Virus record (IMG/VR): IMGVR_UViG_3300023174_000033
Coordinates: 1 to 64,000 of that record
Length of the DNA: 64,000 bases
Strand: one strand, 5' to 3'
Shown here: piece after piece, positions 9,495 to 37,762 of the stretch
How positions within the stretch are numbered: position 1 is the stretch's first letter
How the letters are laid out: the number at the start of each line of letters is the position of its first letter
The notes under the pieces: generated by a model
Seen by the model: only the letters and a program-made list of their open reading frames with translations
Databases searched by the model: none
What the model was told of the DNA's origin: nothing
Translations under genes and position numbers: made by a program

Positions 9495-9662
9495 ATGAAT
9501 AACACAAAAGTTGAAAGAGCAATCTACCTACAAAAAAAGGCGAACGACCAAATAGATACTTATGGTGAAGCATCCCATGATGTTGTAGATGAACTAATGG
9601 AAATTGTAGATTCCTTAAATGAAGGGGAACAATCACTTATGTTAGAACTTTATTACAAATAA
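9495..9662 (+). CDS. 55-aa hypothetical protein; its TAA stop forms the first TAAC core of the array
   Basis: MNNTKVERAIYLQKKANDQIDTYG…LYYK*, after TACCTTTG at 9483-9490; below the ORF-track cutoff. Confidence 0.7.
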   Translation: MNNTKVERAIYLQKKANDQIDTYGEASHDVVDELMEIVDSLNEGEQSLMLELYYK

Positions 9663-9748
9663 CGGTTGGGTGTATATGTAGGTTTTTAAATAAATACTCT
9701 AATATATACTATTGAACTAAATGAAAAACTTACATATACACCTTGTTA
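9660..9748. repeat. attC-like site 1 (class A)
   Basis: TAAC-GGTTG-GGTGTATATGTAGGTTTT … AAAACTTACATATACACC-TT-GTTA. Confidence 0.85.
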
Positions 9749-9806
9749 TGTGTTAGTAAAAAAAATAAAAACTTATTATGAAACAAAAATTATACAAATT
9801 AAAAAT

Positions 9807-10019
9807 ATGAAAATTAAAGACTTAAAAGATTGGTTGGATACACTAACAAAAGAACACGATGAATGCGAAATTGTGTTTAGAAAAATTGTTGGTAAAGATA
9901 ATAAGGATTATATGATTGCGAAGGATAATAGCATTGATGCTTGTGGAATAGACACAGACAATAATGAGGTTTATTTTTGTGATGAAACGACACACAACAT
10001 TATTGAGAAAAACTCATAA
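9807..10019 (+). CDS. Cassette 1 ORF, hypothetical
   Basis: ATG at 9807 (MKIKDLKDWL…KNS) after the conserved cassette leader. Confidence 0.7.
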   Translation: MKIKDLKDWLDTLTKEHDECEIVFRKIVGKDNKDYMIAKDNSIDACGIDTDNNEVYFCDETTHNIIEKNS

Positions 10020-10037
10020 TTTTTGTTTTATTACTTA

Positions 10038-10085
10038 TAACGTCCGATGATAAACAATCGTTTTAATGTTGTTTATCATTTGTTA
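10038..10085. repeat. attC-like site 2 (class B, 48 bp)
   Basis: TAAC-GTCCG-ATGATAAACAA-TCGTTTTAATG-TTGTTTATCAT-TT-GTTA. Confidence 0.85.
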
Positions 10086-10119
10086 GGTTTAGTATCAAAA
10101 ATTTTATACAAATTAAAAT

Positions 10120-10443
10120 ATGAAAGCAAGAATTAACGAGAATGAAACAAAAGAACTGAATCCAACAGAGATTGGAGAAAGGTTCATCAATGTAATGAAT
10201 AAATTACAAGAATTAGGTGTTTTTTATGGTGAAAACTATGGTGGTAAATACGAAGAAAAATATCCACATAGTTGTTATATGTTTAATATTAGATTGGATA
10301 GACATCGTTCTGGTTTTGAAAGTTTAATTGAAGATGGGTGTGGTGATAACACAGAAGAAGTTGAAGTTGCAAGAGAAGATACATCAGTTGAAGAATTATT
10401 GGTTCTTTTGGAAAAGACTTTCGATAAACTAAAAAACTCATAA
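10120..10443 (+). CDS. Cassette 2 ORF, hypothetical
   Basis: ORF between complementary cassette ends; ends in KNS*. Confidence 0.7.
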   Translation: MKARINENETKELNPTEIGERFINVMNKLQELGVFYGENYGGKYEEKYPHSCYMFNIRLDRHRSGFESLIEDGCGDNTEEVEVAREDTSVEELLVLLEKTFDKLKNS

Positions 10444-10537
10444 AATTTTTGATATTGAATATAACTAGCGGCTACACGCAGGTTTATTGTGTATATACAA
10501 CAAATTAAAAAACTCAAAACAATAATTTAATTGAACC

Positions 10538-10650
10538 TAACGGTTGGGTGTATGAGAAGGTTTTTTATTTGGAAATCTCGAAATTTATACCTACCTTTGT
10601 ATGAGTAGTGTGGCTTTGCACATACTTTCAACTTACAGATAAACTTTATA
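10538..10650. repeat. Degenerate attC-like site (class A left arm, decayed right arm) with an internal promoter
   Basis: TAACGGTTGGGTGTATGAGAAGGTTT is identical to the left arm at 12504. Right arm AACTTACAGATAAACTTTATAAAC lacks GTT. TTTG (10568) and TACCTTTG (10592) lie inside. Confidence 0.65.
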
Positions 10651-10663
10651 AACAGTTTTTACT

Positions 10664-10879
10664 ATGGAAGAATTTACACAACATGATTGGAATCACATGC
10701 ACGATTGTATATTACATGCAACTTGGAATACCACGAAGAAGAAATCTACAAGAGAAGAACTTGTGGAAATTTTCAATAAACTACCAGAAGACTTAAAAGA
10801 AGATGCTTACGAATGGGGTATGTCAGATACGTTGTGGAGAGATAAGTTTATTGAATGGTATGAGGAAAATTGTTTATAA
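10664..10879 (+). CDS. Cassette 3 ORF, hypothetical
   Basis: Stop codon overlaps the TAAC core at 10877. Confidence 0.7.
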   Translation: MEEFTQHDWNHMHDCILHATWNTTKKKSTREELVEIFNKLPEDLKEDAYEWGMSDTLWRDKFIEWYEENCL

Positions 10880-10955
10880 CGGTCGCAAATATGAGAAGTA
10901 AATCTTTTCATTAAAAATTAGGCAAAGTAAGATTTATTTCTTATATTTGTTGTTA
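10877..10955. repeat. attC-like site (class C, 79 bp)
   Basis: TAAC-GGTCG-CAAATATGAGAAGTAAATCTT … AAGATTTATTTCTTATATTTG-TT-GTTA. Confidence 0.85.
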
Positions 10956-10985
10956 TAAGTAGTAAAAACTAAAAAAATTATACAA

Positions 10986-11201
10986 ATGGAACAAAAACTC
11001 GAATTAAATTACAAGGAACAAATTGATTTTCTAACTTCAAAAAGAGATATAGAGTTGGAAAAATTGGATAATATGTTAAAAAGTAATTCAGATAGATTAA
11101 AAATAGAAAATCAATTTGATACACTCATGAAAGAACAAAATCAACTATCACTTACAATAGGTGCTAATAGAGTTTTTGTTAATAGTAGATATGGTAAATA
11201 A
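10986..11201 (+). CDS. Cassette 4 ORF a, coiled-coil-like hypothetical
   Basis: ORF inside the cassette. Confidence 0.65.
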   Translation: MEQKLELNYKEQIDFLTSKRDIELEKLDNMLKSNSDRLKIENQFDTLMKEQNQLSLTIGANRVFVNSRYGK

Positions 11202-11218
11202 TTTTAAAAATTAAACAA

Positions 11219-11440
11219 ATGAAAAGAACTAAATTAACAGATTTTATTTTGAAAAACTTACGATGGACTAGTATATTTTTGTGGAATCAAATATATTTTA
11301 ACAGATTAAGTAAAGCGTTAGAAGAATTTAAAAACAATTCAGATGTGGAAACTATTTCACACAAAAATAATGATGTAATTAAAAGTTTTTCAAAAGAAAA
11401 TTTAGGTGATAGTACTATATATAAAGTTGAGGTAGTTTAA
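11219..11440 (+). CDS. Cassette 4 ORF b, hypothetical
   Basis: Second ORF in the same cassette. Confidence 0.6.
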   Translation: MKRTKLTDFILKNLRWTSIFLWNQIYFNRLSKALEEFKNNSDVETISHKNNDVIKSFSKENLGDSTIYKVEVV

Positions 11441-11459
11441 TTTTAGTTTTTATTACTTA

Positions 11460-11538
11460 TAACTGTTGCAAATATGAGAAGTAAATCTTTTCATTAAAAA
11501 ATAAACAAAATAAGATTTATTTCTTATATTTGTTGTTA
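11460..11538. repeat. attC-like site (class C, 79 bp)
   Basis: TAAC-TGTTG-CAAATATGAGAAGTAAATCTT … AAGATTTATTTCTTATATTTG-TT-GTTA; near-identical to 10877-10955. Confidence 0.85.
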
Positions 11539-11552
11539 TATTAGTTAAATTA

Positions 11553-11801
11553 TTGTTTTACAGATTAAAAAAGAAAAAAGTGAAAGAACAAATTATTGAA
11601 ATTTTAGGAAAAAACCACACCACTCCAATACAATTTGATGAATTTAATGGTTTTTATGGACTATATACATATAAAAATGGTGTATATGTGTTTAAGGAAG
11701 GTGAAGATATTGATTATGATGATATTAATGATAGTGATAAAAATAAAATATTAAAAGTGGTTTTGTCTAAAAAATGGAAATTAAATAAATCTCTACAATA
11801 A
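11553..11801 (+). CDS. Cassette 5 ORF, hypothetical
   Basis: ORF filling the cassette; start codon uncertain (TTG or a later GTG). Confidence 0.6.
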   Translation: MFYRLKKKKVKEQIIEILGKNHTTPIQFDEFNGFYGLYTYKNGVYVFKEGEDIDYDDINDSDKNKILKVVLSKKWKLNKSLQ

Positions 11802-11820
11802 ACAATAATTTAATTGAATA

Positions 11821-11868
11821 TAACGTCTGATGATAAACAATCGTTTTAATGTTGTTTATCATTTGTTA
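11821..11868. repeat. attC-like site (class B, 48 bp)
   Basis: TAAC-GTCTG-ATGATAAACAA-TCGTTTTAATG-TTGTTTATCAT-TT-GTTA; 1 nt different from 10038-10085. Confidence 0.85.
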
Positions 11869-11914
11869 TAAGTATGTAAAACAAAAATTATACAAATTAA
11901 AAAAAAATAAAATT

Positions 11915-12148
11915 ATGAGTTGGAAATTAAACACAGAAGATGAAAATCCATTATGGAGACAATATATGGATGAACTTGAAAAAATGAATCCAGAGGAATC
12001 AAGAAAATGGGAGGTAGTAAGAGAATTACCAGTTGAATTACCATTTAAGACAACAACGACATCCAATTATTCAGAAGATGAATTTTTGGAAAAATTGAAA
12101 ACTGATGAGGACTTTAATAAGAGATGGGGTAAATTAAAAAACTCATAA
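11915..12148 (+). CDS. Cassette 6 ORF, hypothetical
   Basis: ATG at 11915 (MSWKLNTEDE…KLKNS) after the conserved leader. Confidence 0.7.
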   Translation: MSWKLNTEDENPLWRQYMDELEKMNPEESRKWEVVRELPVELPFKTTTTSNYSEDEFLEKLKTDEDFNKRWGKLKNS

Positions 12149-12166
12149 TTTTTGTTTTATTACTTA

Positions 12167-12214
12167 TAACGATTGCAAATATATTGTCGTTTTAATGCAA
12201 TATATTTGTTGTTA
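12167..12214. repeat. attC-like site (class C-type stem with class B loop, 48 bp)
   Basis: TAAC-GATTG-CAAATATATTG-TCGTTTTAATG-CAATATATTTG-TT-GTTA. Confidence 0.85.
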
Positions 12215-12252
12215 TAGGTAGTTTATTAATTTTCTAAAACGGATTAAAAGAT

Positions 12253-12495
12253 ATGACACACGAATACATAAATGAATTATTAGAAAGACAGGGTGAAAAT
12301 CCTGTTTTGTTAGATAGATGTGTATTAAACATCACTGATGGTAGAAGTATAATTTACACACTTTGTGGTGATACTGATTATGAACAACGAGAACTTGAAA
12401 TATGCTATGCTGATAAACATAGTGATGTTATTTGGAAAGGTATCGTTAAAACAAAACAGGAATTGGAAAAGGTAGTTTTAGAAAATTTAAAATAA
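12253..12495 (+). CDS. Cassette 7 ORF, hypothetical
   Basis: ORF between complementary ends. Confidence 0.7.
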   Translation: MTHEYINELLERQGENPVLLDRCVLNITDGRSIIYTLCGDTDYEQRELEICYADKHSDVIWKGIVKTKQELEKVVLENLK

Positions 12496-12503
12496 ATTAC
12501 ATA

Positions 12504-12591
12504 TAACGGTTGGGTGTATGAGAAGGTTTGCTTTGATGAACTTTCAAATTATCACCAATGCTGATAGCAAACTTTCTTATACACCTTGTTA
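12504..12591. repeat. attC-like site (class A, 88 bp)
   Basis: TAAC-GGTTG-GGTGTATGAGAAGGTTTGCT … AGCAAACTTTCTTATACACC-TT-GTTA. Confidence 0.85.
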
Positions 12592-12702
12592 TAACCAGTA
12601 CGGTAAAATTGCACAAATGTTTGATTGAAATACTGAACAAAAACTTTTAAAAATGTGCGGTGGGAATTTTAAAATTGAATATTTATATATAAAGTAAAAA
12701 CT

Positions 12703-13200
12703 ATGAGTGAAGATATACGCAAAATGATTGATAAAGTTAAGAAATTTAAACAATTTATTAGCGAAAGTAATACTACAAATTATATCAATTGGAGTGATTT
12801 ACCAATCCAAGTAAAAAATGACATAACTGAAAATTTGAGAGATAATATACGATATATTAAAGAAGAATATTGGAATAGTGAAGCGTTGAGAGATTCTATT
12901 GACGATTCTATTAATAAACCAATTTTTAAAATAGAATATAAAAATGTTGATGTTTTGTATAACGAACTTATACAAATTGGTTGGGGTATTAGTGAAGACA
13001 ATGTTAAAAGATTAATTTCTGCTCTAAAAAATGGTGCTGAACTTGACCCAATTATACTTGAAAACGGTAAATTTTTTGATGGTGGTCATAGATTGACTGC
13101 ATACAAAAAAATGAAAAAAGAATTAATACCTACAATTGATATTGGATTTTTGATGAATTTCGATTGGGAAAAATGGGACAACGGACAGGCTGATTTTTAA
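12703..13200 (+). CDS. Cassette 8 ORF, ParB/Srx-like domain protein
   Basis: LDPIILENGKFFDGGHRLTAY motif. Confidence 0.7.
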   Translation: MSEDIRKMIDKVKKFKQFISESNTTNYINWSDLPIQVKNDITENLRDNIRYIKEEYWNSEALRDSIDDSINKPIFKIEYKNVDVLYNELIQIGWGISEDNVKRLISALKNGAELDPIILENGKFFDGGHRLTAYKKMKKELIPTIDIGFLMNFDWEKWDNGQADF

Positions 13201-13247
13201 AAGTTTTTGAAAAAAAATGCTAAATAGAACGTATAATGTAATATTGG

Positions 13248-13280
13248 TTATAACTAACATATATCTACAATAACCTGTTT
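13248..13280. other. Candidate attI-like primary site at the integrase-proximal end of the array
   Basis: The last cassette ends in TAAC (13251-13254), followed by non-palindromic TAACATATATCTACAATAAC about 50 bp before the integrase start. Confidence 0.45.
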
Positions 13281-13305
13281 TTCCACCTTTTAAACAAACT
13301 GGCAA

Positions 13306-13814
13306 GTGAAAAAAACCAACTATTACGAAATTTGTAAAACAAAACTGCAATACCTAAACTACTCACCCAAAACCCAATCTACCTATTTACACTATGTAGA
13401 GCAATTCCTAAACGCAACCAAAATACCACCTACAAGGCTTACCTCACAAGATTTTCAATCCTATCTTGATAACTTTAATTTCACCTCAACATCCCAACAA
13501 AATCAAGTAATAAATTCAATCCGATTTCTATATAAGTTTGGACTGAATAAGAAATATGATAAGGTTTCTTTCAAAAGACCTAAATCAGAAAAAAAACTAC
13601 CTAAAGTAGTTGATTCCGATTTTATACTCAATAAACTTGACCAAATAGGTAATATCAAACACAAAACTATACTAACACTAACCTTTTCTGTGGGTCTTAG
13701 AGTATCTGAAATAACTAACCTTAAAATTGAAGATATTGACTCTAAACGAATGATAATCCATATCAAAAATGCGAAAGGTAGAAAAGATAGAATAGTCCCA
13801 CTTTCACAAAAAGT
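13306..13814 (+). pseudogene. Tyrosine recombinase (integron-integrase/XerD-like), N-terminal part
   Basis: NYSPKTQSTY…F, QNQVINSIRFLY, KKLPKV, GLRVSE..NLKIEDID and KGRKDRIVPL motifs; breaks off at the GIY-YIG gene. Confidence 0.9.
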
Positions 13815-14600
13815 CTATTTCAAATTATAATCTTCTAAATATCTAAAATTAGTATTATTTTTTATTTGTCCTAAAAGTTTAGCTTTTAAGGTTCTTACCT
13901 TTATTCCCATTGAATCGGCTGCTTCCTTTTTACTCGGAAAAATTTCTCCAGTTTCAATGTTTATAATTGGTCTTTTATTATGAGCTACTTTTCCTTTATT
14001 CGATTCACTTATTTTTTTCTTTGTTTCACCTGAATGTTTTTTACCCGACATTGGTTTATGATGAGCATGATTTTTACTAATTTTTTTTCTTATATCATCT
14101 GTAAGTTTTACACCCTTTCTATTTGAATTGCCCTTAGTGAAATTATTACCTAATAACCAACCATTTTCTAAATATGATTCCAATTGATTTACACATACTA
14201 GAATACACTCATTATCTTTATAAATCCATTTTTTACCAAATTGTGGATTTTTTTCATTACTGAAATCAGCTCTATTCATTTTCATTAATAACTTAGTATA
14301 ATCAGACATTATATAACTATCACCACCCTCCCTCAAATTTAATCCAATGTCACTATTAAAGCTATTAAACTCTGCTATGTATTTTTTCTCTAAAAAATTT
14401 AATTCATCTCTTTCACATTCTACAAGAATAGAAAATTCATGATTTTCCCAACCATATTTTTTTATAGAATTATATAAAAAAGTTTGTTCTATGCATTTTT
14501 CCGATTTATATGATCTAATTCTTCTCTTTATATCAATTGATTGTCCTATATAAATTCTACCAGATGGAGAAACTATTTTATATATACCACATATTTTCAT
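13815..14600 (-). CDS. GIY-YIG homing endonuclease with NUMOD3-like repeats
   Basis: GIYKIVSPSGRIYIGQS…R…Y, LE..YI..FNS…GLNL..GG, GKKHSGETKKKIS and C-terminal IINIETGEIFPS..EAA motifs. Confidence 0.92.
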   Translation of the reverse strand: MKICGIYKIVSPSGRIYIGQSIDIKRRIRSYKSEKCIEQTFLYNSIKKYGWENHEFSILVECERDELNFLEKKYIAEFNSFNSDIGLNLREGGDSYIMSDYTKLLMKMNRADFSNEKNPQFGKKWIYKDNECILVCVNQLESYLENGWLLGNNFTKGNSNRKGVKLTDDIRKKISKNHAHHKPMSGKKHSGETKKKISESNKGKVAHNKRPIINIETGEIFPSKKEAADSMGIKVRTLKAKLLGQIKNNTNFRYLEDYNLK

Positions 14601-14633
14601 TAAAAACTAATTAATTTACATTATATATTAAAA

Positions 14634-14735
14634 ATGATAATCCAAAAAATAGCAGGTCACTCAAATGTTAAAACAACTGAAATATATACACACGTCTCAA
14701 ATCAATTACTAAGTAAAGTAAATCTACCCATATGA
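14634..14735 (+). pseudogene. C-terminal remnant of the tyrosine recombinase (catalytic Tyr box)
   Basis: Translates as MIIQKIAGHSNVKTTEIYTHVSNQLLSKVNLPI*, matching IQxLxGHxxxxTTxIYTH. Confidence 0.9.
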
Positions 14736-15076
14736 AAGTAATTATAGCAGGCTCAAGAAACTTTAATGACTACAACTTACTAAAATCAAGTTGTGATAAC
14801 CTACTTACACAATTCACTAATATAGAAATAGTTAGTGGAACCGCCAGAGGTGCAGATAAACTTGGTGAAAAATATGCAAGGGAGAAAGGTTATGATATAA
14901 AACAATTCCCAGCTAATTGGAATTTGGGTAAAAGTGCTGGATATATTAGAAATGATGAAATGGCACAGTATGCAGATATGTTAATTGCGTTCTGGGATGG
15001 AACAAGTAGAGGAACTAAACATATGATTGATTTGGCTAATAAAAGAAGTTTAAAGGTTGAAATTGTAAGATATTAA
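14732..15076 (+). CDS. SLOG/YspA-like (DUF2493) protein
   Basis: KVIIAGSR, IVSGTARGAD, AGYIRN..M and FWDG.SRGT motifs. Confidence 0.85.
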   Translation: MKVIIAGSRNFNDYNLLKSSCDNLLTQFTNIEIVSGTARGADKLGEKYAREKGYDIKQFPANWNLGKSAGYIRNDEMAQYADMLIAFWDGTSRGTKHMIDLANKRSLKVEIVRY

Positions 15077-15104
15077 AATAAATAAGTTTTTATATATATC
15101 ACAT

Positions 15105-15479
15105 ATGGAACACTTATGTGATTTTTTGGATTTTGTAGAACTTCTTGAAGAATCTAATGACCCAAAAGTAGGAACTGGTAAAAAACCTAAAGGTTCCAGT
15201 AGAAGACTTTACACAGATGAAAACCCGAATGATACAGTATCAGTTAAGTTCAGAACTAAAGAAGATGTTCAACAAACAATCAATAGCCAATCATTCAAAT
15301 CTAAATCACATAAAAGACAATCACAAATACTAAACCTTATTGAACAAAGGTTAAGAGTGGCTCATAAAAGAGCAAAAGATACAGATACAAAAGAAAGATT
15401 GAAAAGAGCTCACGATTATATAAAATCAAAATGTGAAGCATCTAAAAAGAAAACCCAAAGGTTAAAAGAAATTGGGTAA
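15105..15479 (+). CDS. Basic hypothetical phage protein
   Basis: ORF after a TATATA element; DPKVGTGKKPKGS.RRLYTDENP segment. Confidence 0.7.
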   Translation: MEHLCDFLDFVELLEESNDPKVGTGKKPKGSSRRLYTDENPNDTVSVKFRTKEDVQQTINSQSFKSKSHKRQSQILNLIEQRLRVAHKRAKDTDTKERLKRAHDYIKSKCEASKKKTQRLKEIG

Positions 15480-15561
15480 GTTTTATCGGGGTAAATAAAC
15501 AATTGTCTGAGCATAAAGTAAAATTACATAACCAATCCCTTGAATCAAAATAACTAATTAT

Positions 15562-16518
15562 ATGAAAATATTCACCGGTTCAAATAACAATCAATTAAGT
15601 CAAAAAATATCAAATAGCTTACAATCTATTTCAAATGGGTATTATACTGACTCATTCGATAGTCTTAAAATAGAGAAGTTTTCAGATGGTGAAATACTTC
15701 CACTCTTTACCGAATCTGTTAGAAATCAAGATGTTTATTTTATACAAAGTTTAGTAAGCAGTGATGCAATAATGGAAACCTTACTCGTATCAGATGCCGC
15801 TAAAAGAGCAGGTTGCTTATCTTTTAATCTAATATCACCTTATATGGGATACTCAAGACAAGATAAAACAGATCACCTAAGATCTTCTATTGGCTCTAAA
15901 GTTATCGCTGATATATTTGAAAAAATAGGAGTTAATAATTTATTCACTATCGACCTACACGCATCCTCTATTCAAGGATTCTATAACATACCAGTTATAC
16001 ATTTAAATGGTAATAAAATATTTATTGATTACTTAAAAGATCTAAACATTGATGATATTTGCATCGTAGCACCAGATCAAGGTGCGGTTAAAAGAGCCTC
16101 GGATTACTGTAAAGCTTTCCCAGATTCTACATTCGCAATGATTAATAAAAAAAGAACTAAACCAAATGAAGTTCATTCAATGGAGCTAGTTGGTGATGTT
16201 AAAGATAAAAACGTTGTTATCGTTGATGATATAGCAGATACCCTTGGAACTTTGAAAAAAGCATCAGAACTTGTTAAATCACACGGGGCCAAATCAGTTA
16301 GAGCAATTTGTACTCACGGAATCCTTTCCTCAAGTGCTATCAAAAATCTTGAAGAATCCCCTTTAATAGAATTATTGGTTTCAGATAGTATAGAATCTGT
16401 TATTGATAAAGCAACTTGGAGTAATAAGTTAAGAGTCGTAACTTGCGCTGATATCCTATCCAAAACAGTTATAGCAGTCCACCATAAGAAAAGTGTACAC
16501 GAAATAAACATAATCTAA
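15562..16518 (+). CDS. prs: Ribose-phosphate pyrophosphokinase
   Basis: FSDGEI, ESVR, YSRQDK, DLHA..IQGFY, PDQG, VDDIADT.GT and THG motifs. Confidence 0.95.
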   Translation: MKIFTGSNNNQLSQKISNSLQSISNGYYTDSFDSLKIEKFSDGEILPLFTESVRNQDVYFIQSLVSSDAIMETLLVSDAAKRAGCLSFNLISPYMGYSRQDKTDHLRSSIGSKVIADIFEKIGVNNLFTIDLHASSIQGFYNIPVIHLNGNKIFIDYLKDLNIDDICIVAPDQGAVKRASDYCKAFPDSTFAMINKKRTKPNEVHSMELVGDVKDKNVVIVDDIADTLGTLKKASELVKSHGAKSVRAICTHGILSSSAIKNLEESPLIELLVSDSIESVIDKATWSNKLRVVTCADILSKTVIAVHHKKSVHEINII

Positions 16519-24184: not shown

Positions 24185-26743
24185 TTAAGGTGGGCAAGTT
24201 CCCCATACTGGTTTTGGTAATGTCCATGCTGCCCCAGGTCCGGAGAATAATGATGGCACTGAAGGTATTAATGAAACACACCAGCCACTCAGATCTCTAT
24301 TGAATGCGCTTGCAAGAAAGAACATATTATCCATGTTTGTTACATTAGACGTATCCCAATTACCTATATTCTGATTGAAAATACTCGCACCCACAAACAT
24401 ACCATACATTGTAGTTACATTTGATGTGGTCCAAGAACCAATATTCTGATTGAAATTGGTTGCACTAGCAAACATATCACTCATACTTGTAACTTGTGAG
24501 GTGTTCCAAGAACTAATGTTACCATTAAATGATGGTGCCTGAGAGAACATTTCACTCATATCTGTAACTTGTGATGTGTTCCAACTATTAAGAGTATTAT
24601 TAAATGCGTTTGCACTATAGAACATACGACTCATGTTTGTAACAGACGAAGTATCCCATCCACTTATGTTTTGGTTGAATACATCAGCACCCTCGAACAT
24701 ACCACTCATATTTGTTACATTTGAAGTAGTCCAACTTCCAATATTTCTGTTGAACGATACTGCATTATTAAACATCCCACTCATATTATTTATGGTTGAT
24801 GTGTTCCAATTTCCGATATTCCCATTGAAACTTGAGGCGTTCCAAAACATGAGACTCAAATCAGTGACCTGACGAAGATTAGGGGCGTCCGTAGCTGAAT
24901 AAGTCATATTAACACAATCAGCAAAAGCCCCGTTAAGAGATCCTTTCCAATGATTGGTTCCCCATTGAACTATGTCAGTAACTTTGACCGCATCCGAGGA
25001 TCCAGCAAATTGTATTGATGGAAATACTTTAGTAATGCTGATACTAAATTTACTTCCAGTTGCAAAATTTATTGTATGATTTCCAGTGAGTCCTCTAACA
25101 GATCCCTTATTGCCTGATGTGATCAAATCCTGCCAAGTTACATTGTATCTGTATGAGTATCCGTATTGGTCGTAAGTCGGTATAGTGAAGTTTGAACCAC
25201 TACCTAGTGCAGTGTCAATATTGAAAATAAATGGACTTTGTGATGCTGAAAAGCCCCAATTTGGTTTTTGTAAGCCCCACGCTGAAGCTCCCGTTTTGAA
25301 ACCATCCGGTTCGGTCAACTTATTAGGAACCGACCATAAACTGAGATCTTGATTGAATGATGAAGCTCCATTGAACATACCATCCATATATGGTCCAGTA
25401 GCACCTTTTGAAACATCCCAGTATCCTATATCTTGATTGAATGAACTTGCACCGGAGAACATACCAAAAAAACTGGTACTTTTTGAAACTGTCCATCCGC
25501 TGATATCTTGATTGAATGATGGTGCATTGGAAAACATGCCAATCATGTTATTGGCTTGAGTTGTGTCCCAATTTGATATATCACCATTGAAAGCAATTGC
25601 TCCCGAGAACATATTTTGAAAGTTAAGGGTATTACTTGCAGTATATAAATTCCAAGTATTCAAATTTTGATTGAATGATTCTGCATTATAGAACATTCGG
25701 AAGAAACTTGAAACTTTTGTGACATTCCAAGCACTTATATCTTGGTTGAATGATATTGCTCCCTCAAACATAGCACTTACAGAAAAAACATTAGATACTG
25801 TCCAAGTTCCGATAGGCTGGTCAAATATAGAACATTCTTGGAACATATTGGCCAAAGTTACAGCACTTGTTAGATTCCAGTTACTGATATTTTGATTAAA
25901 CGATGAGCAACCATAGAACATTCCAGAAAATGTGTTAACATTACCAACATCCCAAGAACTCAAAGGTTGATCGAACGAGCTACATAAATAGAACATAAGT
26001 CCCATATTTTGTACAGAAGATACATTCCAAGAATTCAAAGGTTGATCAAACGAGCTACACAAATAGAACATTGATTGCATGGATGCAACATTTGAAACAA
26101 TCCAGCTAGAAATATCTTGATTAAACGGTATACATCCATAGAACATTTGTTCCATTAACGTTACACTTGAAACGTCCCAAGTTGTCACATCACCATTGAA
26201 TAAACTACATCCAGAAAACATACTAGTCATATCAGTGATCGTACTTGTGTCCCAACCACTCAAATCTGGATTTGTTATAGAACTACAATTTAAAAACGCT
26301 TCCACCATGCTAGTAACATTGGATAAATTTGGGTAATCTATAGCTGTAATTGTCATATTCAAACAACCAGAAAATGCACTGTTAAAACTTTCCCATACTA
26401 TATTGCCCCAATTTTCTATTCTAGTTAATTTTAGACAACTACCAGTATTTGCAAATTTTACAGATGGGTAGGTACCCGTAATTTTTATTCTCCATATACC
26501 TGGATTTGGTAAAATAAAATTAAGTCCACTATTTTGATTTGTATATAAACCATTATTTGATGGATTCCCAACCTCCTCATAGTATAGGTCAAAAAGATAT
26601 GTTAGTGTGTTATCATAAGGAATATCCAAACTTGGATTACCATCTCCCAAACTAGTATCAAATCGCATTACGAATTCTGGTCCAACATAAGGAGGTTCCT
26701 CTGAGGGACTAGAATCTATAATGCCGTGTAATAGTGAAATCAT
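24185..26743 (-). CDS. BspA/DUF285-repeat surface or fibre protein (two repeat blocks)
   Basis: Many ~25-aa FNQDISxWDVSxVTxMxxMF repeats. Confidence 0.92.
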   Translation of the reverse strand: MISLLHGIIDSSPSEEPPYVGPEFVMRFDTSLGDGNPSLDIPYDNTLTYLFDLYYEEVGNPSNNGLYTNQNSGLNFILPNPGIWRIKITGTYPSVKFANTGSCLKLTRIENWGNIVWESFNSAFSGCLNMTITAIDYPNLSNVTSMVEAFLNCSSITNPDLSGWDTSTITDMTSMFSGCSLFNGDVTTWDVSSVTLMEQMFYGCIPFNQDISSWIVSNVASMQSMFYLCSSFDQPLNSWNVSSVQNMGLMFYLCSSFDQPLSSWDVGNVNTFSGMFYGCSSFNQNISNWNLTSAVTLANMFQECSIFDQPIGTWTVSNVFSVSAMFEGAISFNQDISAWNVTKVSSFFRMFYNAESFNQNLNTWNLYTASNTLNFQNMFSGAIAFNGDISNWDTTQANNMIGMFSNAPSFNQDISGWTVSKSTSFFGMFSGASSFNQDIGYWDVSKGATGPYMDGMFNGASSFNQDLSLWSVPNKLTEPDGFKTGASAWGLQKPNWGFSASQSPFIFNIDTALGSGSNFTIPTYDQYGYSYRYNVTWQDLITSGNKGSVRGLTGNHTINFATGSKFSISITKVFPSIQFAGSSDAVKVTDIVQWGTNHWKGSLNGAFADCVNMTYSATDAPNLRQVTDLSLMFWNASSFNGNIGNWNTSTINNMSGMFNNAVSFNRNIGSWTTSNVTNMSGMFEGADVFNQNISGWDTSSVTNMSRMFYSANAFNNTLNSWNTSQVTDMSEMFSQAPSFNGNISSWNTSQVTSMSDMFASATNFNQNIGSWTTSNVTTMYGMFVGASIFNQNIGNWDTSNVTNMDNMFFLASAFNRDLSGWCVSLIPSVPSLFSGPGAAWTLPKPVWGTCPP

Positions 26744-26752
26744 ATTATTATT

Positions 26753-28537
26753 TTATGCTTTTAAGTCTCCAAATACATACCAGTTATCGGTGCTTAGTTT
26801 GATTAGAGTTGCAGCTGAATATTGAAAATTCAAATTTAAATATCCTTGAGCCGAATTTACCGTTACAACTCCACCACCAGTCACACCTAACTCACCAGTA
26901 CCAGACCTTATGATTACCAACTGTGTTCCATTAGGAAATGGTACAGTACTATCTTGTGGTATGGTTAAGTTTTCATTTGAACCAGATGTTAAATCAATTA
27001 CTTTCCCCTCATCACTTTGTACTAATGTGTAACTTGTTGATTGAGGATTTATACCAAGTACTGAAAGATTCCTCCATTTCATTTTCAATGAGTTAGCTTC
27101 ATCCCAAACTAAAACTTTATTTAGTGTGTCATCATTTGATGCTGTAGCCACTTTAAGTTCTGGAACATAAACAAGATTTGGTTCACTATTTAAAAATAAG
27201 TTACTACCACCTAAAATAACAGATTGTGCTGATGAATTCAAACAATTTTGATATCCACCAATTATTGAAGAATTACAAGAATTGTAACTCATAGTATTAC
27301 CCTTACCGCCAATTATTGACGAATAATCAGCATTTCCACAAATTAAATTATCACGTCCAGCAAAAATCCCCGAGCTGTTATCACTCGAACAAAGAGTGTT
27401 CCGATAACCACCAATGATTGATGAATTACTAGAATCATAAATTATATTACAACATCCAGTAACTACTGATGAATTATATGATGAATAGCAAACTTTATTA
27501 CAAATTCCAGAAACAACTGCGGAACATGCAGCACAAATATAATTACGATAACCACCAATCAAAGGGGATGAACCACTATTAAAAATACGGTTGCAAGTTC
27601 CACCTGAAATTATAGAATAGACACTCGATGAAACTTTATTACAGAACCCACCACCTATGGAAGAGCCCCAAGATAAACAAGTAATTTCATTACACCTACC
27701 GCCTAATATCGTTGATTGATAAGATTGAAAATATATTTTATTATATTTACCAGAAACAATTGAATCACAAGAGTTGTCAGAAATTATATTTGAACACCCA
27801 CCAATTATGGTTGATTGACAAGATTGAGTTGCAATTGTATTACAAAATCCACCAACTATTGAAGACCTACAAGAATAAGATTGAATTGTATTAGAAATAC
27901 CCCCAGTTATTGATGAATTAGAAGAATTACACTGAAGTGTATTACACTGACCCCCAATTATTGATGAATAATTAGATTGAGTTGCAATTGTATTACAAAA
28001 TCCCCCAACTATTGATGAATAAGGATTAAATTGAAGTGTATTACACATACCCCCAACTATTAAAGATCTAGAAGAACATTGAAGTGTATTACACATACCC
28101 CCAACTATTGATGAATAACGAGATTGACACTTAAGTGTATTACAAAAACCACCAACTATTGTTGAATCATAAGAATTAGATTGAAGTGTGTTAGATTGAC
28201 CACCAATAATTGATGAATGAGTTGAATAAAGATCTATAGTATTACCCCAACCCCCAATTATTGAAGACCTAGAAGAACCACACTGAAGTGTATTACACAC
28301 CCCCCCAACTATTACAGAATTACAAGAACTTATATCAATTGAACTTGATTCAGCAACCTTTAAATTTTTGTAAGTTGAATTAAATGTAAATACATCACTA
28401 GATACTATACCAGTACCATTACCAAATCCTATTTCACCTGATGGTAAAGCAGCTGAACCACTACCCCCACCAATTAAACTAACCGTCACCCCATTTACCG
28501 TGAAATCTCCAATTAAATCAATATTATCAATCCTCAT
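26753..28537 (-). CDS. Repeat-rich tail-fibre-like protein
   Basis: Numerous SSIxGGxCNT repeats; C-terminal YTLV.SD.GK…FP.GT…W…GDL module. Confidence 0.75.
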   Translation of the reverse strand: MRIDNIDLIGDFTVNGVTVSLIGGGSGSAALPSGEIGFGNGTGIVSSDVFTFNSTYKNLKVAESSSIDISSCNSVIVGGVCNTLQCGSSRSSIIGGWGNTIDLYSTHSSIIGGQSNTLQSNSYDSTIVGGFCNTLKCQSRYSSIVGGMCNTLQCSSRSLIVGGMCNTLQFNPYSSIVGGFCNTIATQSNYSSIIGGQCNTLQCNSSNSSITGGISNTIQSYSCRSSIVGGFCNTIATQSCQSTIIGGCSNIISDNSCDSIVSGKYNKIYFQSYQSTILGGRCNEITCLSWGSSIGGGFCNKVSSSVYSIISGGTCNRIFNSGSSPLIGGYRNYICAACSAVVSGICNKVCYSSYNSSVVTGCCNIIYDSSNSSIIGGYRNTLCSSDNSSGIFAGRDNLICGNADYSSIIGGKGNTMSYNSCNSSIIGGYQNCLNSSAQSVILGGSNLFLNSEPNLVYVPELKVATASNDDTLNKVLVWDEANSLKMKWRNLSVLGINPQSTSYTLVQSDEGKVIDLTSGSNENLTIPQDSTVPFPNGTQLVIIRSGTGELGVTGGGVVTVNSAQGYLNLNFQYSAATLIKLSTDNWYVFGDLKA

Positions 28538-36050: not shown

Positions 36051-36635
36051 ATGTCAAACAACAGCCAAACATTATCTGAACTCTTTAATGAATCATTTTA
36101 TCTACCAGTTTATAAGAGGTGGAGAGTTGATAAGGAAAAAGCAGGTAAAGATATCGTAGGTGAAGAGTATGAGAAATTCAGAAAGAATTACTATACACAA
36201 AAAGGTTTAAAAGCCCTTAAAGGTAAAAGAGTCTTTGGTGATATGAATCCTGACCTGGTTGTATATAAAGGTGATGAAATTGTTATTGTTGAAGAATGTA
36301 AGGGACATTACGTTGATAAATGTTTCCTTGAAAGAGCTATAGGTGATGCTGTTAAAATCTTCAGATGGTGTTTAGAGAATAAAAAATCAATGCCTTATTT
36401 TGTTTTGAGTTGTGCTACTAATCTAAAGACTTTCAACCCAATCTTCAATCATATCGTTGATAACTATAGGAAAGATTTATCCGATATCCTTAAAGAGAAG
36501 TTTGTTTACCTACCACTATGTGACCACGGCAGATTACCTAAAAATAGTTATTTCACTAACCCAGATAATAACTTTAAAATTGATCAAAACCTTGTAGATA
36601 AACAAGAAGAGATTATCTCAAATATTACAAAGTAA
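36051..36635 (+). CDS. Putative PD-(D/E)xK nuclease (restriction-endonuclease-like)
   Basis: NPDLVV…VEECKG motif; converges on a methyltransferase gene. Confidence 0.55.
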   Translation: MSNNSQTLSELFNESFYLPVYKRWRVDKEKAGKDIVGEEYEKFRKNYYTQKGLKALKGKRVFGDMNPDLVVYKGDEIVIVEECKGHYVDKCFLERAIGDAVKIFRWCLENKKSMPYFVLSCATNLKTFNPIFNHIVDNYRKDLSDILKEKFVYLPLCDHGRLPKNSYFTNPDNNFKIDQNLVDKQEEIISNITK

Positions 36636-37680
36636 TATAATCAAAACTCTCTCCAATTGACAAAACCTTTTTAATTCTTGGTTTTGTTATTGATTCACAT
36701 ATATTTGATTCGTTATTCGTAACCAGAATAAACTTACGGTTTGATTCTGGATTTTCTCTATTGTATTCCAATACAGCCTGACCTAAAGTACCACTACCAG
36801 CAAAAAAATCCAATATAACCGAATCATTCCTAGATGCAATCTCTATAATCCGTTTAATTAGTTTAACTGGTTTAGGATAAAGGAAACTAGCTTCAACCTT
36901 TAGAATATCTTCTAAATCCTTTGTACCATCTTGAGTATATCCAACATCTTGACCTAACCAAAGGTTTCTAATACCCCTTCCTTTAGAATTCCCTAGAAAA
37001 GTTTTCTTGGTAGGACAAGAATCACCTTTCTCACCCCAATAGATTAGGTTTTCCTTAACTAATGTGTTATACCATTCTTCTTCAGAGTAATTCCAACCTT
37101 TAGTCCACTTAACACCAGTGGGAGATTCAACTGTATAAACCTTCTTGGTTTTCTTTTTAAATAACTGAACTCCTTTCCTCCAAGGCCCCCTAGGATCATT
37201 ATCCCAATTCTTATATACTTTAGCGTATTCAGGATCTAATGGATCATTATTGATAATTACTTTCTTTGGATTCTTACAGTAAACCAAAATTGATTCTGTT
37301 TGACTAGATATACCTTGTTTATCATTTGATACGGTGTATTTACATTGCCAAACTATAGTGGATAAATGATTCTTTATATCAAAAATAGTATCACAAAGAA
37401 TCCTCAAATAAGGAGCATTCTTATCATTTATATTGATGAATATAAGTCCATCCTCGGTAAGCAATTCTTTGGATAATTCAAGTCTTGGTTTCAAGAAGTC
37501 TAACCAAGATTGCATACCATTAAATGAGTCTTTATACTTACCCATTTTTTTACCAGTGTTATAAGGGGGATCTATACTGATTAACTGTATCTTTCCCTTT
37601 AATTCCTCTCTGAATTTATTTAGAAAATCTAAATTATCAGAATTGAATAAATAATTCCTATTCAAATTAATCATACTCAT
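36625..37680 (-). CDS. Adenine DNA methyltransferase (Mod-like, beta class)
   Basis: IDPPYNTG, YPKP..L..RII and LDFFAGSGT motifs; start at 37680 follows a minus-strand TATATTTG. Confidence 0.93.
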   Translation of the reverse strand: MSMINLNRNYLFNSDNLDFLNKFREELKGKIQLISIDPPYNTGKKMGKYKDSFNGMQSWLDFLKPRLELSKELLTEDGLIFININDKNAPYLRILCDTIFDIKNHLSTIVWQCKYTVSNDKQGISSQTESILVYCKNPKKVIINNDPLDPEYAKVYKNWDNDPRGPWRKGVQLFKKKTKKVYTVESPTGVKWTKGWNYSEEEWYNTLVKENLIYWGEKGDSCPTKKTFLGNSKGRGIRNLWLGQDVGYTQDGTKDLEDILKVEASFLYPKPVKLIKRIIEIASRNDSVILDFFAGSGTLGQAVLEYNRENPESNRKFILVTNNESNICESITKPRIKKVLSIGESFDYITL

Positions 37681-37762
37681 TATATCACAAATATAAGCTA
37701 ATGTCTGGTTTTTTACAAAATATATTTTAAAATCCATAAAATATCATTATCTTTGTATTCAT

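Follow-up and report, generated by a model that had tools for sequence, protein, structure and literature searches.

Among the systems that move small genes as cassettes, integrons (IntI, attI and attC cassette arrays, for example the Vibrio sedentary chromosomal integrons and class 1 integrons) are one of the closest known to the locus examined here. In the present study, we analysed a window of 64,000 nucleotides (positions 1 to 64,000 of IMG/VR record IMGVR_UViG_3300023174_000033) from a 464-kb phage of Bacteroidota, in which a row of small unrelated genes is separated by hairpin sites next to a tyrosine recombinase gene. As in integrons, the recombinase gene sits next to a simple half-site and an array of unrelated small genes, and these genes are separated by imperfect palindromes bounded by AAC…GTT, which are conserved in structure rather than in sequence and have a variable terminal loop of 3 nt to more than 70 nt. 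In addition, G follows AAC on the favoured strand, one strand is favoured for folding, that strand runs toward the integrase, cassette content turns over between close relatives, and arrays without an integrase also exist. However, intact homologues of the recombinase are 266 aa, lack the IntI insertion and are closest to XerA. The sites have a 3-nt bulge (5 x 2 nt spacer) and an invariant G·T, instead of a roughly symmetric unpaired spacer plus single extrahelical bases. In phages, the ORFs lie on the folding strand and point toward the integrase, so each site precedes its ORF; expression cannot come from a promoter at the integrase end. The cassettes are very small (median 326 bp), and the hosts are phages, including phages of 460 kb, and Bacteroidota, a phylum regarded as nearly integron-free.

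In a previous study, Qi et al (PMC9892861) reported clusters of attC sites without integrase in phage genomes, notably in Polaribacter phage P12002L, and attC-like sites in phages are not wholly new. We found that P12002L carries about 7 sites of the type described here, around its methyltransferase genes. Two were called attC by HattCI/Infernal, and one predicted attC site was recombined by IntI1 in E. coli. That study used canonical models only, reported two sites in that phage, no cognate recombinase and no attI, and did not cover huge phages or the Bacteroidota chromosomal counterparts. The PeSL modules of T4-type phages (PMC2839356, PMC4122927) are also short conserved stem-loop modules that flank small novel ORFs in hyperplastic regions of large lytic phages and mark the ends of insertions, deletions and replacements. 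PeSLs consist of an early promoter plus a terminator and are shuffled by homologous recombination with no dedicated recombinase, whereas here there is no terminator tail, no excess of sigma-70-like promoters in a consensus scan, a linked recombinase with a half-site, and strict polarity. In the Xer/dif systems (archaeal XerA, bacterial XerC/D), the recombinase XerA is the most similar to the present one in sequence and size, but dif-type sites are about 28 bp of double-stranded DNA with two arms and a 6-bp spacer, and not 46-128 nt hairpins in one-orientation arrays. We found no description of an integron-like platform with this non-IntI recombinase.

Hairpin sites, cassettes and the interrupted recombinase gene

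The seven intact palindromes of the original prediction were confirmed. Seven intact hairpin sites (46-89 nt, TAAC…GTTA ends) lie at 9660-12591, all on the + strand, and have the form TAAC-(G N T N G)-stem…stem-TT-GTTA. As single-stranded DNA they fold with z-scores of -3.2 to -6.3 on the + strand, and less well on the - strand. A covariance model built from 28 such sites (3 from the window, 25 from other contigs) was run over the whole window with filters off. It found these seven sites (E 2e-13 to 1e-3, + strand) and nothing else below E=1, although the three window sites match the model by construction. The motif TAACGNYNG occurs 10 times in the window against 3.0 expected, and 7 of the 10 lie in the array.

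The eight inter-site segments each hold 1-2 small + strand ORFs of 70-165 aa with no similarity to each other. Site 1 (9660-9748, 89 nt, family A; model R1, 81.1 bits, E 3e-12) is followed by an ORF at 9807-10019 (70 aa from ATG), of which a 98.7% identical copy occurs in another viral contig, L047 (the viral loci compared are denoted by L and a number), where the upstream site is different. Site 2 (10038-10085, 48 nt, 34.2 bits) belongs to a short class with a conserved loop, and is followed by an ORF of 107 aa (10120-10443) with no family match. The two damaged sites of the original prediction are real, and the stretch at 10462-10640 (+) contains remnants of three truncated sites of different types, with left arms and loop pieces but without right arms; it showed no fold and reached only 12.3 bits. 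The next ORF (10664-10879, 71 aa) has its stop codon inside the TATAAC box of site 3 (10877-10955, 79 nt, family C, 60.9 bits). A cassette with two ORFs of 71 and 73 aa (10986-11440) precedes site 4 (11460-11538, 79 nt, family C, 50.2 bits), which is 96% identical to a site in huge phage LR756500.1. An ORF of 82 aa from TTG (11553-11801) is followed by site 5 (11821-11868, 48 nt, short class, 37.7 bits), and an ORF of 77 aa from ATG (11915-12148) by site 6 (12167-12214, 48 nt, short class, 40.7 bits), which has the same loop as sites 2 and 5 with a covarying stem. After an ORF of 80 aa (12253-12495), site 7 (12504-12591, 88 nt, family A, 87.6 bits) is of the commonest type, found in 66 stretches of viral contigs. 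A conserved leader plus the last cassette ORF (165 aa) occupy 12592-13200, and the N-terminal leader peptide of this ORF is shared by many array ORFs elsewhere.

The array ends at an attI-like half-site at 13249-13269 (+), a TATAAC box followed by an AT-rich box with no palindromic partner, about 40 nt before the recombinase gene. This half-site is conserved at about 35-60 nt upstream of the integrase genes in the 12 loci aligned. The recombinase is dead in this window. Its N-terminal fragment (13306-13830, +, 174 aa) carries a SAM-like domain, the catalytic Arg and the Lys hairpin, and its C-terminal fragment (14634-14735, +, 33 aa) carries the catalytic Tyr motif. Between them, a GIY-YIG/NUMOD homing endonuclease gene (13815-14600, -, 261 aa) replaces about 64 codons, including the HxxR motif. 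The original prediction described a tyrosine recombinase with an integron-integrase-like N-terminus, but the enzyme is Xer/XerA-like and not an IntI, and here it is a pseudogene. It also described the ORFs as pointing toward the integrase; this is better put as integrase and site polarity arranged as in a textbook integron, with only the ORFs inverted.

Strand bias, linkage to the integrase and cassette turnover

The stems of the sites covary. In 141 non-redundant sites, 84-94% Watson-Crick pairing is kept at stem positions 1-6 and 72-87% at positions 7-12, the remainder being almost all G·T or T·G wobble, and all four pair types occur at nearly every position, although our site finder required pairing, which inflates these percentages. 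In one alignment (A1), 16 of the 18 pairs in the long stem show double compensatory changes, and the covariation score is 0.647 against 0.162 in shuffles and 0.06-0.17 when partners are slid. G·T/T·G outnumber A·C/C·A by about 320:11 in phage sites and by 115:3 in bacterial sites, although in the latter the ORFs lie on the opposite strand. The favoured fold is therefore not an mRNA feature, which argues for a folded single DNA strand rather than an mRNA hairpin. Furthermore, the G after AAC (78% of 419 sites, 28/28 in A1) matches what Bouvier et al report for the attC bottom strand (PMC2727003).

The same sites occur in over 70 viral contigs. Loci were fetched only because they matched a site, and in all 13 where the integrase is in range (window included) it lies immediately downstream of the array in the same orientation. 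Many arrays, however, have no integrase within reach, for example that of L001. Related Bacteroidota chromosomes carry the integrase plus arrays with textbook ORF-site polarity, and all 41 model hits near homologous integrases in these genomes point toward the integrase. In these chromosomal relatives the integrase has the same orientation as the cassettes and its 3' end faces the array, while in the phage version its 5' end faces the array.

Gene order at these loci is not fixed. Two phages (L157 and L158) with an identical integrase and 99-99.8% identical flanks hold unrelated arrays of 3.6-4.0 kb, and homology resumes about 20 nt before the CATAAC half-site and is exact from it onward. L013 and L047 share a 100% identical cassette bounded by ATAAC on both sides, with unrelated neighbours, and a 99.6% identical cassette abuts the half-site in L019 but is internal in L047. 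Of 246 cassettes, 181 are singletons. The ends of homology blocks cluster at the 5' TAAC box, but many of these counts come from one abundant site family and are not independent. Some blocks end at the 3' GTTA box, or share an ORF while both flanking sites differ (window/L047 and L059/L072). One fixed crossover point therefore does not explain everything, and homologous recombination in conserved flanks must contribute.

Proposed mechanism and alternative readings

Overall, these findings support the original prediction, and we consider it likely that the region is an integron-like cassette platform with a Xer/XerA-like recombinase, although no recombination has been observed and everything rests on comparative sequence. 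Each cassette is a hairpin-forming site followed by one or two small ORFs, apparently with a promoter-like leader of their own. By analogy with attC sites, it is proposed that the + strand of each site folds as single-stranded DNA into a 6-7 bp TAAC/GTTA box, a 3-nt bulge, and a long stem with an invariant G·T about 13 bp in. The recombinase would bind the box and the adjacent stem and exchange strands inside the 5' TAAC box, so that site-by-site recombination would excise a cassette as a circle and site-by-half-site recombination would insert it next to the integrase. The recombination of one predicted site of P12002L by IntI1 (PMC9892861) gives external support. On the other hand, the recombinase lacks the insertion held to be essential for integron integrases (PMC8138268), and the sites lack the single extrahelical bases of attC. 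In this particular phage the recombinase is inactivated and some sites are decaying, and the array is therefore frozen unless an enzyme is supplied in trans.

The strongest alternative, which we regard as unlikely, is that the hairpins are composite regulatory modules (terminator or RNA-stability hairpin plus promoter) like the PeSLs, shuffled by ordinary homologous recombination, and that the neighbouring integrase is not the agent. In phages the hairpins lie on the mRNA strand between ORFs and are followed by conserved AT-rich motifs close to the start codons, conserved flanks extend beyond the core on both sides, some shared ORFs have different sites on both sides, and PeSL-mediated swapping is documented in T4-like phages (PMC2839356, PMC4122927). 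However, there is no T-tract after the stems and no excess of sigma-70-like promoters in a consensus scan, and in bacterial arrays the favoured strand is antisense to the ORFs, yet the wobble bias is the same. In addition, linkage to the integrase and polarity toward it are strict, a conserved half-site sits exactly at the array/integrase junction, and invariant AAC/GTT and an invariant G·T persist in otherwise unrelated stems.

It is also improbable that the sites act only at the RNA level, as processing sites or translational switches, with no role in DNA rearrangement. The G·U-compatible bias lies on the sense strand in phages, the roughly 122-nt class encloses the start codon of the next ORF, start codons sit inside the loops of the long class, and the right arm is coding. 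Nevertheless, the bias is the same when the ORFs are on the other strand, cassette turnover and junctions fall at the core, the sites are linked to the integrase, and no Rfam family matches.

A canonical integron, or a cluster of canonical attC sites, picked up from a bacterial host is largely refuted by the integrase tests. The ends are AAC…GTT, the integrase has a PF13495 N-terminal domain, the integron-integrase model gives a partial hit, and standard tools called two such sites in P12002L (PMC9892861). But the intact homologue scores 149 bits against a cut-off of 265 for integron integrase, lacks about 48 residues where the IntI insertion lies, and has its best matches in XerA. Moreover, the site geometry differs, the ORFs are inverted, and IntegronFinder surveys report essentially no integrons in Bacteroidetes (PMC9024848).

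Finally, the hairpins are strand-specific and have conserved short ends, but it is very unlikely that they are non-autonomous elements of the REP or IS200/IS605 type that were moved by a single-strand transposase and accumulated in a permissive region, because no Y1/HUH transposase is seen in the fetched loci, the protein that recurs beside the arrays is a tyrosine recombinase, and the sites form regular one-orientation arrays, one per gene, rather than scattered insertions, with none elsewhere in the 64 kb.

Hairpin sites and the inactivated recombinase

In the present study, seven imperfect palindromes were found on the + strand between 9660 and 12591. They are 48, 79 or 88-89 nt long and have the same ends and geometry, namely TAAC, a five-base spacer beginning with G, a long stem, a variable loop, the returning stem, TT and then GTTA. 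The sites fall into four sequence families that share little beyond the ends, and the three 48-nt sites share a loop but have different, mutually compensating stems. As single-stranded DNA, the + strand folds with z-scores of -3.2 to -6.3, and the - strand folds less well. A covariance model was built from an alignment of 28 sites, of which 25 came from other contigs, and was run over all 64 kb without filters. It found these seven sites on the + strand (E 2e-13 to 1e-3) and nothing else below E=1, although the three window sites used in the alignment match the model by construction. In addition, positions 10462-10640 contain the left arms and loop pieces of three different site types without right arms, and these are decayed sites. 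The eight inter-site segments hold one or two + strand ORFs of 70-165 aa, which are unrelated to each other. Searches of Pfam, NCBIfam and PHROGs gave nothing for them beyond three PHROG families of unknown function for one ORF. Three cassette ORFs end with the same C-terminal residues and the same roughly 30 nt before the TAAC box (10008-10037, 10430-10465 and 12137-12170). This upstream flank is complementary to the flank after the site, so that the potential stem extends up to about 18 bp beyond the box.

The tyrosine recombinase gene starts at 13306 with a PF13495 N-terminal domain and the first catalytic Arg and Lys, and it stops at 13830. A 261-aa GIY-YIG/NUMOD homing endonuclease gene occupies 13815-14600 on the - strand (PF01541 and PF07460; TIGR01453, 83 bits against a cut-off of 56), and the last 33 codons of the recombinase, with the catalytic Tyr, resume at 14634. 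Comparison with intact homologues showed that residues 171-234, including HxxR, are missing, and therefore the enzyme of the window is dead. A group I intron was rejected, as about 64 codons are missing and the inserted gene is on the opposite strand. GIY-YIG genes were also found in three other fetched viral loci, beside a deleted integrase remnant of about 25 codons (L019), beside a truncated integrase (L021) and just downstream of the intact integrase (L028), and the integrase locus looks like a recurrent target of homing endonuclease genes. Directly after the integrase remnant (14732-16518) come a SLOG/YspA-family (DUF2493-like) gene and a ribose-phosphate pyrophosphokinase gene. The latter is 72% identical in DNA to the 634-642 kb uncultured huge phages LR745206 and LR756502, which have no sites or integrase at this locus but are too distant to be informative. 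The window is part of a 464,605-bp viral contig. Large ORFs at 24188-28537 and 36628-37737 match PHROG families, one very strongly to families of unknown function, one with a tail-fibre-like C-terminus and one DNA methyltransferase, which is consistent with the viral classification of the contig.

The intact homologues are 266 aa and have all catalytic residues. They scored 189 bits with the archaeal XerA model (cut-off 220), 145-147 with XerC/XerD (about 330), 149 with the integron-integrase model TIGR02249 (265), where the match splits into two stretches, and 94.5 with NF011946 (435). Thus, neither the curated Xer scores nor the curated integron-integrase scores were reached. In the comparison with structures, E was 1e-40 for P. 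abyssi XerA and 1e-26 for VchIntIA. Residues 176-214 of the intact homologue span what is 179-265 in VchIntIA, so that about 48 residues are missing where the IntI insertion lies. Public sources call these proteins only 'XerD'. More than 120 clusters at 77% identity or above are listed, nearly all exactly 266 aa, and some lie on contigs of 160-350 kb.

Distribution and polarity of the arrays

The commonest site type occurs in 66 stretches of IMG/VR contigs of 4.7-464 kb, and a second type occurs in 7. A structure-aware scan of these loci gave 421 non-redundant sites, in one-orientation arrays of 5-19. The loci were fetched only because of a site match. Even so, 13 of them (window included) contain the integrase, always immediately downstream of the array and in the same orientation. 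In all 12 loci aligned, a conserved half-site lies about 35-60 nt upstream of the integrase gene. It consists of CATAAC followed by an AT-rich box with no palindromic partner, and in the window it is at 13249-13269. The homology of arrays breaks there. It is a candidate attI site only, for which no function has been shown. The huge phage LR756500.1 (L001) shares only the sites with the window and not the flanks, which shows that sites spread between unrelated genomes but is not an orthologous comparison.

One genome per species was scanned with the intact integrase. This returned 80 loci, almost all from Bacteroidota, at 38-73% identity. In complete or long assemblies, for example Polaribacter sp. 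R77954, Seonamhaeicola maritimus, Tamlana and Hyunsoonleella, the integrase is followed by ORFs in the same direction, each followed by a 122-126 nt site of the same design. In the Polaribacter sp. R77954 chromosome (L138, 9530-20030), the integrase is 371 aa with an N-terminal extension, and the cargo is miscellaneous (RelA/SpoT-like, DndB-like, DUF1697 and AHSA1-like proteins). Many other hits end at contig edges right after the integrase, as if the arrays break assemblies. No conserved motif emerged between the integrase stop and the first site in this integrase-first arrangement. Among the hits examined, essentially only integrases, with a few unrelated genes, matched between phage arrays and the fetched bacterial loci.

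With the covariance model, all 27 minus-strand hits in the bacterial-genome loci lie downstream of the integrase and all 14 plus-strand hits lie upstream. The strand that carries AAC-G at its 5' end therefore always runs toward the integrase (41/41), as it also does in the 13/13 viral loci. This is the polarity of the attC bottom strand in integrons, on which Bouvier et al also noted that a G follows AAC in most attC sites (PMC2727003). Here, G follows AAC in 78% of 419 sites and in 28/28 of the model alignment. The orientation of the ORFs differs between the two settings. In bacteria they are antisense to the site strand, i.e. in the textbook order of ORF and then site, in all 18 cassettes of the five integrase-first loci (L092, L100, L126, L128 and L138) and in 23 of 31 cassettes over all bacterial-genome loci. 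In phage arrays the ORF is on the site strand in 215 of 232 cassettes, so that the textbook order, in which the ORF precedes its attC and is read away from the integrase end (Pc logic), does not hold. Seen from the integrase, the phage version has the textbook arrangement of gene, half-site and site polarity, and only the ORFs are inverted.

Folding strand and cassette turnover

Stem positions 1-6 are Watson-Crick in 84-94% of 141 non-redundant sites, and at positions 7-12 the figure is 72-87%, with almost all the remainder wobble pairs. All four pair types occur at nearly every position. It should be noted that our site finder required pairing, which inflates the percent-paired figure, and that AAC and GTT were search anchors. 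Beyond them, the flanking T…A and the G after AAC are invariant in the alignment, and lengths range from 46 to about 128 nt. In the same alignment, 16 of the 18 pairs in the long stem show double compensatory changes, and the covariation score was 0.647, against 0.162 in shuffles and at most 0.165 when partners were slid. The non-Watson-Crick pairs are almost all G·T or T·G on the site strand, about 320 against 11 A·C or C·A in phages and 115 against 3 in bacteria. Since the ORFs are on opposite strands in the two settings, a hairpin selected in mRNA cannot explain both, but a fold of one DNA strand can. The folds show a 3-nt bulge on the 5' arm and no single-base bulges. Two wobble pairs are essentially invariant, one next to the box (28/28) and the other 13 pairs into the stem (27/28; never G-C), and we read them as recognition or strand-choice features that play the part of attC extrahelical bases. 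No Rfam family matched. Sites of the roughly 122-nt class (L001 12881-12994; L072 1135-1247; L157 8842-8969) enclose the start codon of the downstream ORF in their loop, and the right arm is coding, with a recurrent peptide ending in ISDV. In L158, the same left arm and N-terminus are fused to a different continuation without a right arm.

Of 246 inter-site segments (median 326 bp), 181 are singletons at 75% identity. The phage loci L157 and L158 come from different samples and encode the identical integrase, and their flanks are 99.0% identical on the left and 98.6-99.8% on the right over more than 10 kb. However, the 3.6-4.0 kb arrays between them are unrelated apart from site fragments, and homology resumes about 20 nt before the CATAAC half-site and is exact from it onward. 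The viral loci L013 and L047 share a 315-nt block at 100% identity, which consists of one site plus the following ORF, is bounded by ATAAC on both sides and has unrelated neighbours. A 741-nt cassette is 99.6% identical in L019 and L047, and it abuts the half-site in L019 but is followed by another site in L047. Across all loci, homology blocks most often begin or end at the 5' TAAC box, although many of these involve one abundant site family and are not independent. There are exceptions, as some block ends fall at the 3' GTTA box. The first cassette ORF of the window plus its downstream site is 98.7% identical to L047, which has a different upstream site, and one ORF is shared by L059 and L072 with both flanking sites different. 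One fixed crossover point was therefore rejected as a complete account, and exchange at the other box, or homologous recombination in conserved flanks, must also occur.

Comparison with known systems and cassette content

The original prediction of an integron-like cassette array beside a tyrosine recombinase was confirmed as an observation, and its interpretation as a gene capture and shuffling platform was supported, with corrections. We are fairly confident that the most likely mechanism is integron-like single-strand site-specific recombination by a Xer-like enzyme, although biochemical proof is entirely lacking and the evidence of turnover is only comparative. In this phage the platform is inactivated and beginning to decay. 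The system works like an integron, and its sites are imperfect palindromes with AAC/GTT cores that are conserved in structure rather than sequence and have a variable terminal loop. However, it does not qualify as an integron as defined by IntegronFinder, because the integrase has no IntI insertion and scores below the curated cut-offs, the sites have no extrahelical bases, and in phages the ORFs are inverted. The PeSL modules of T4-type phages, which are promoter-terminator composites recombined homologously, are the nearest phage analogue for hyperplastic regions. In simple scans of our sites, 41 promoter-like matches were found against 44.5 expected for sigma-70-type promoters, none of the sites was called terminator-like and none has a T-tract. 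A Xer/dif system is not supported either, since the sites are 46-128 nt hairpins in arrays and not a single short double-stranded dif-type site.

IntegronFinder surveys report essentially no integrons in Bacteroidetes (PMC9024848), and a 2024 preprint lists Bacteroidota among clades previously found without integrons. In a previous study, Qi et al screened 10,705 phage genomes and found 3 integrons and 17 attC clusters. One cluster had two sites in Polaribacter phage P12002L, detected by HattCI/Infernal, and IntI1 recombined one of those sites (PMC9892861). We found that P12002L carries about seven sites of the present type around its methyltransferase genes, which is a partial precedent and indirect functional support. 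In the full-text literature searched, which did not cover subscription journals, we found no paper describing the recombinase, half-site and site system, the Bacteroidota chromosomal arrays or the huge-phage arrays.

It is about as likely as not that a second lineage of integrons exists that does not use IntI, in which a compact Xer/XerA-like recombinase works on structured single-stranded sites. Such a lineage would be widespread in Bacteroidota chromosomes and in their phages, from about 40 kb up to huge phages of about 460 kb. In phages it would keep an inverted-ORF cassette pool that turns over between near-identical genomes and probably supplies anti-defence or virion-packaged proteins, and phage and host arrays may exchange cassettes because they share site type and enzyme family. 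Integrons are the textbook system for capturing and reshuffling genes, are defined by IntI and its special insertion, and are found by surveys to be almost absent from Bacteroidota and rare in phages. A parallel system with a plain Xer-like enzyme would mean that the folded-strand cassette mechanism evolved, or persisted, outside IntI, and that standard detection tools are missing a large reservoir of such arrays. It would also offer a concrete mechanism for the hyperplastic ORFan regions of large and huge phages, give phages a dedicated device for swapping small accessory genes, and add a compact recombinase and site pair of possible use as a structure-specific recombination tool.

With regard to cassette content, the half-site-proximal cassette of L157 (9707-9940) encodes, according to precomputed Pfam annotation, a Lar-type restriction-alleviation protein, and a cassette of L158 (2378-2899) encodes a GNAT acetyltransferase. 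These are the only functional hints for phage cassettes, and the Lar hit points toward anti-defence. In addition, dozens of otherwise unrelated array ORFs, in the window (leader at 12703-12765) and in the viral loci L008-L073, begin with one of two conserved leaders of about 18-21 residues ending in L/I/V-x-E, after which similarity stops abruptly. This resembles the capsid-targeting sequences of T4 internal proteins, which are probably cleaved by the prohead protease after L/I-x-E, and the cassettes may encode packaged, injected proteins.
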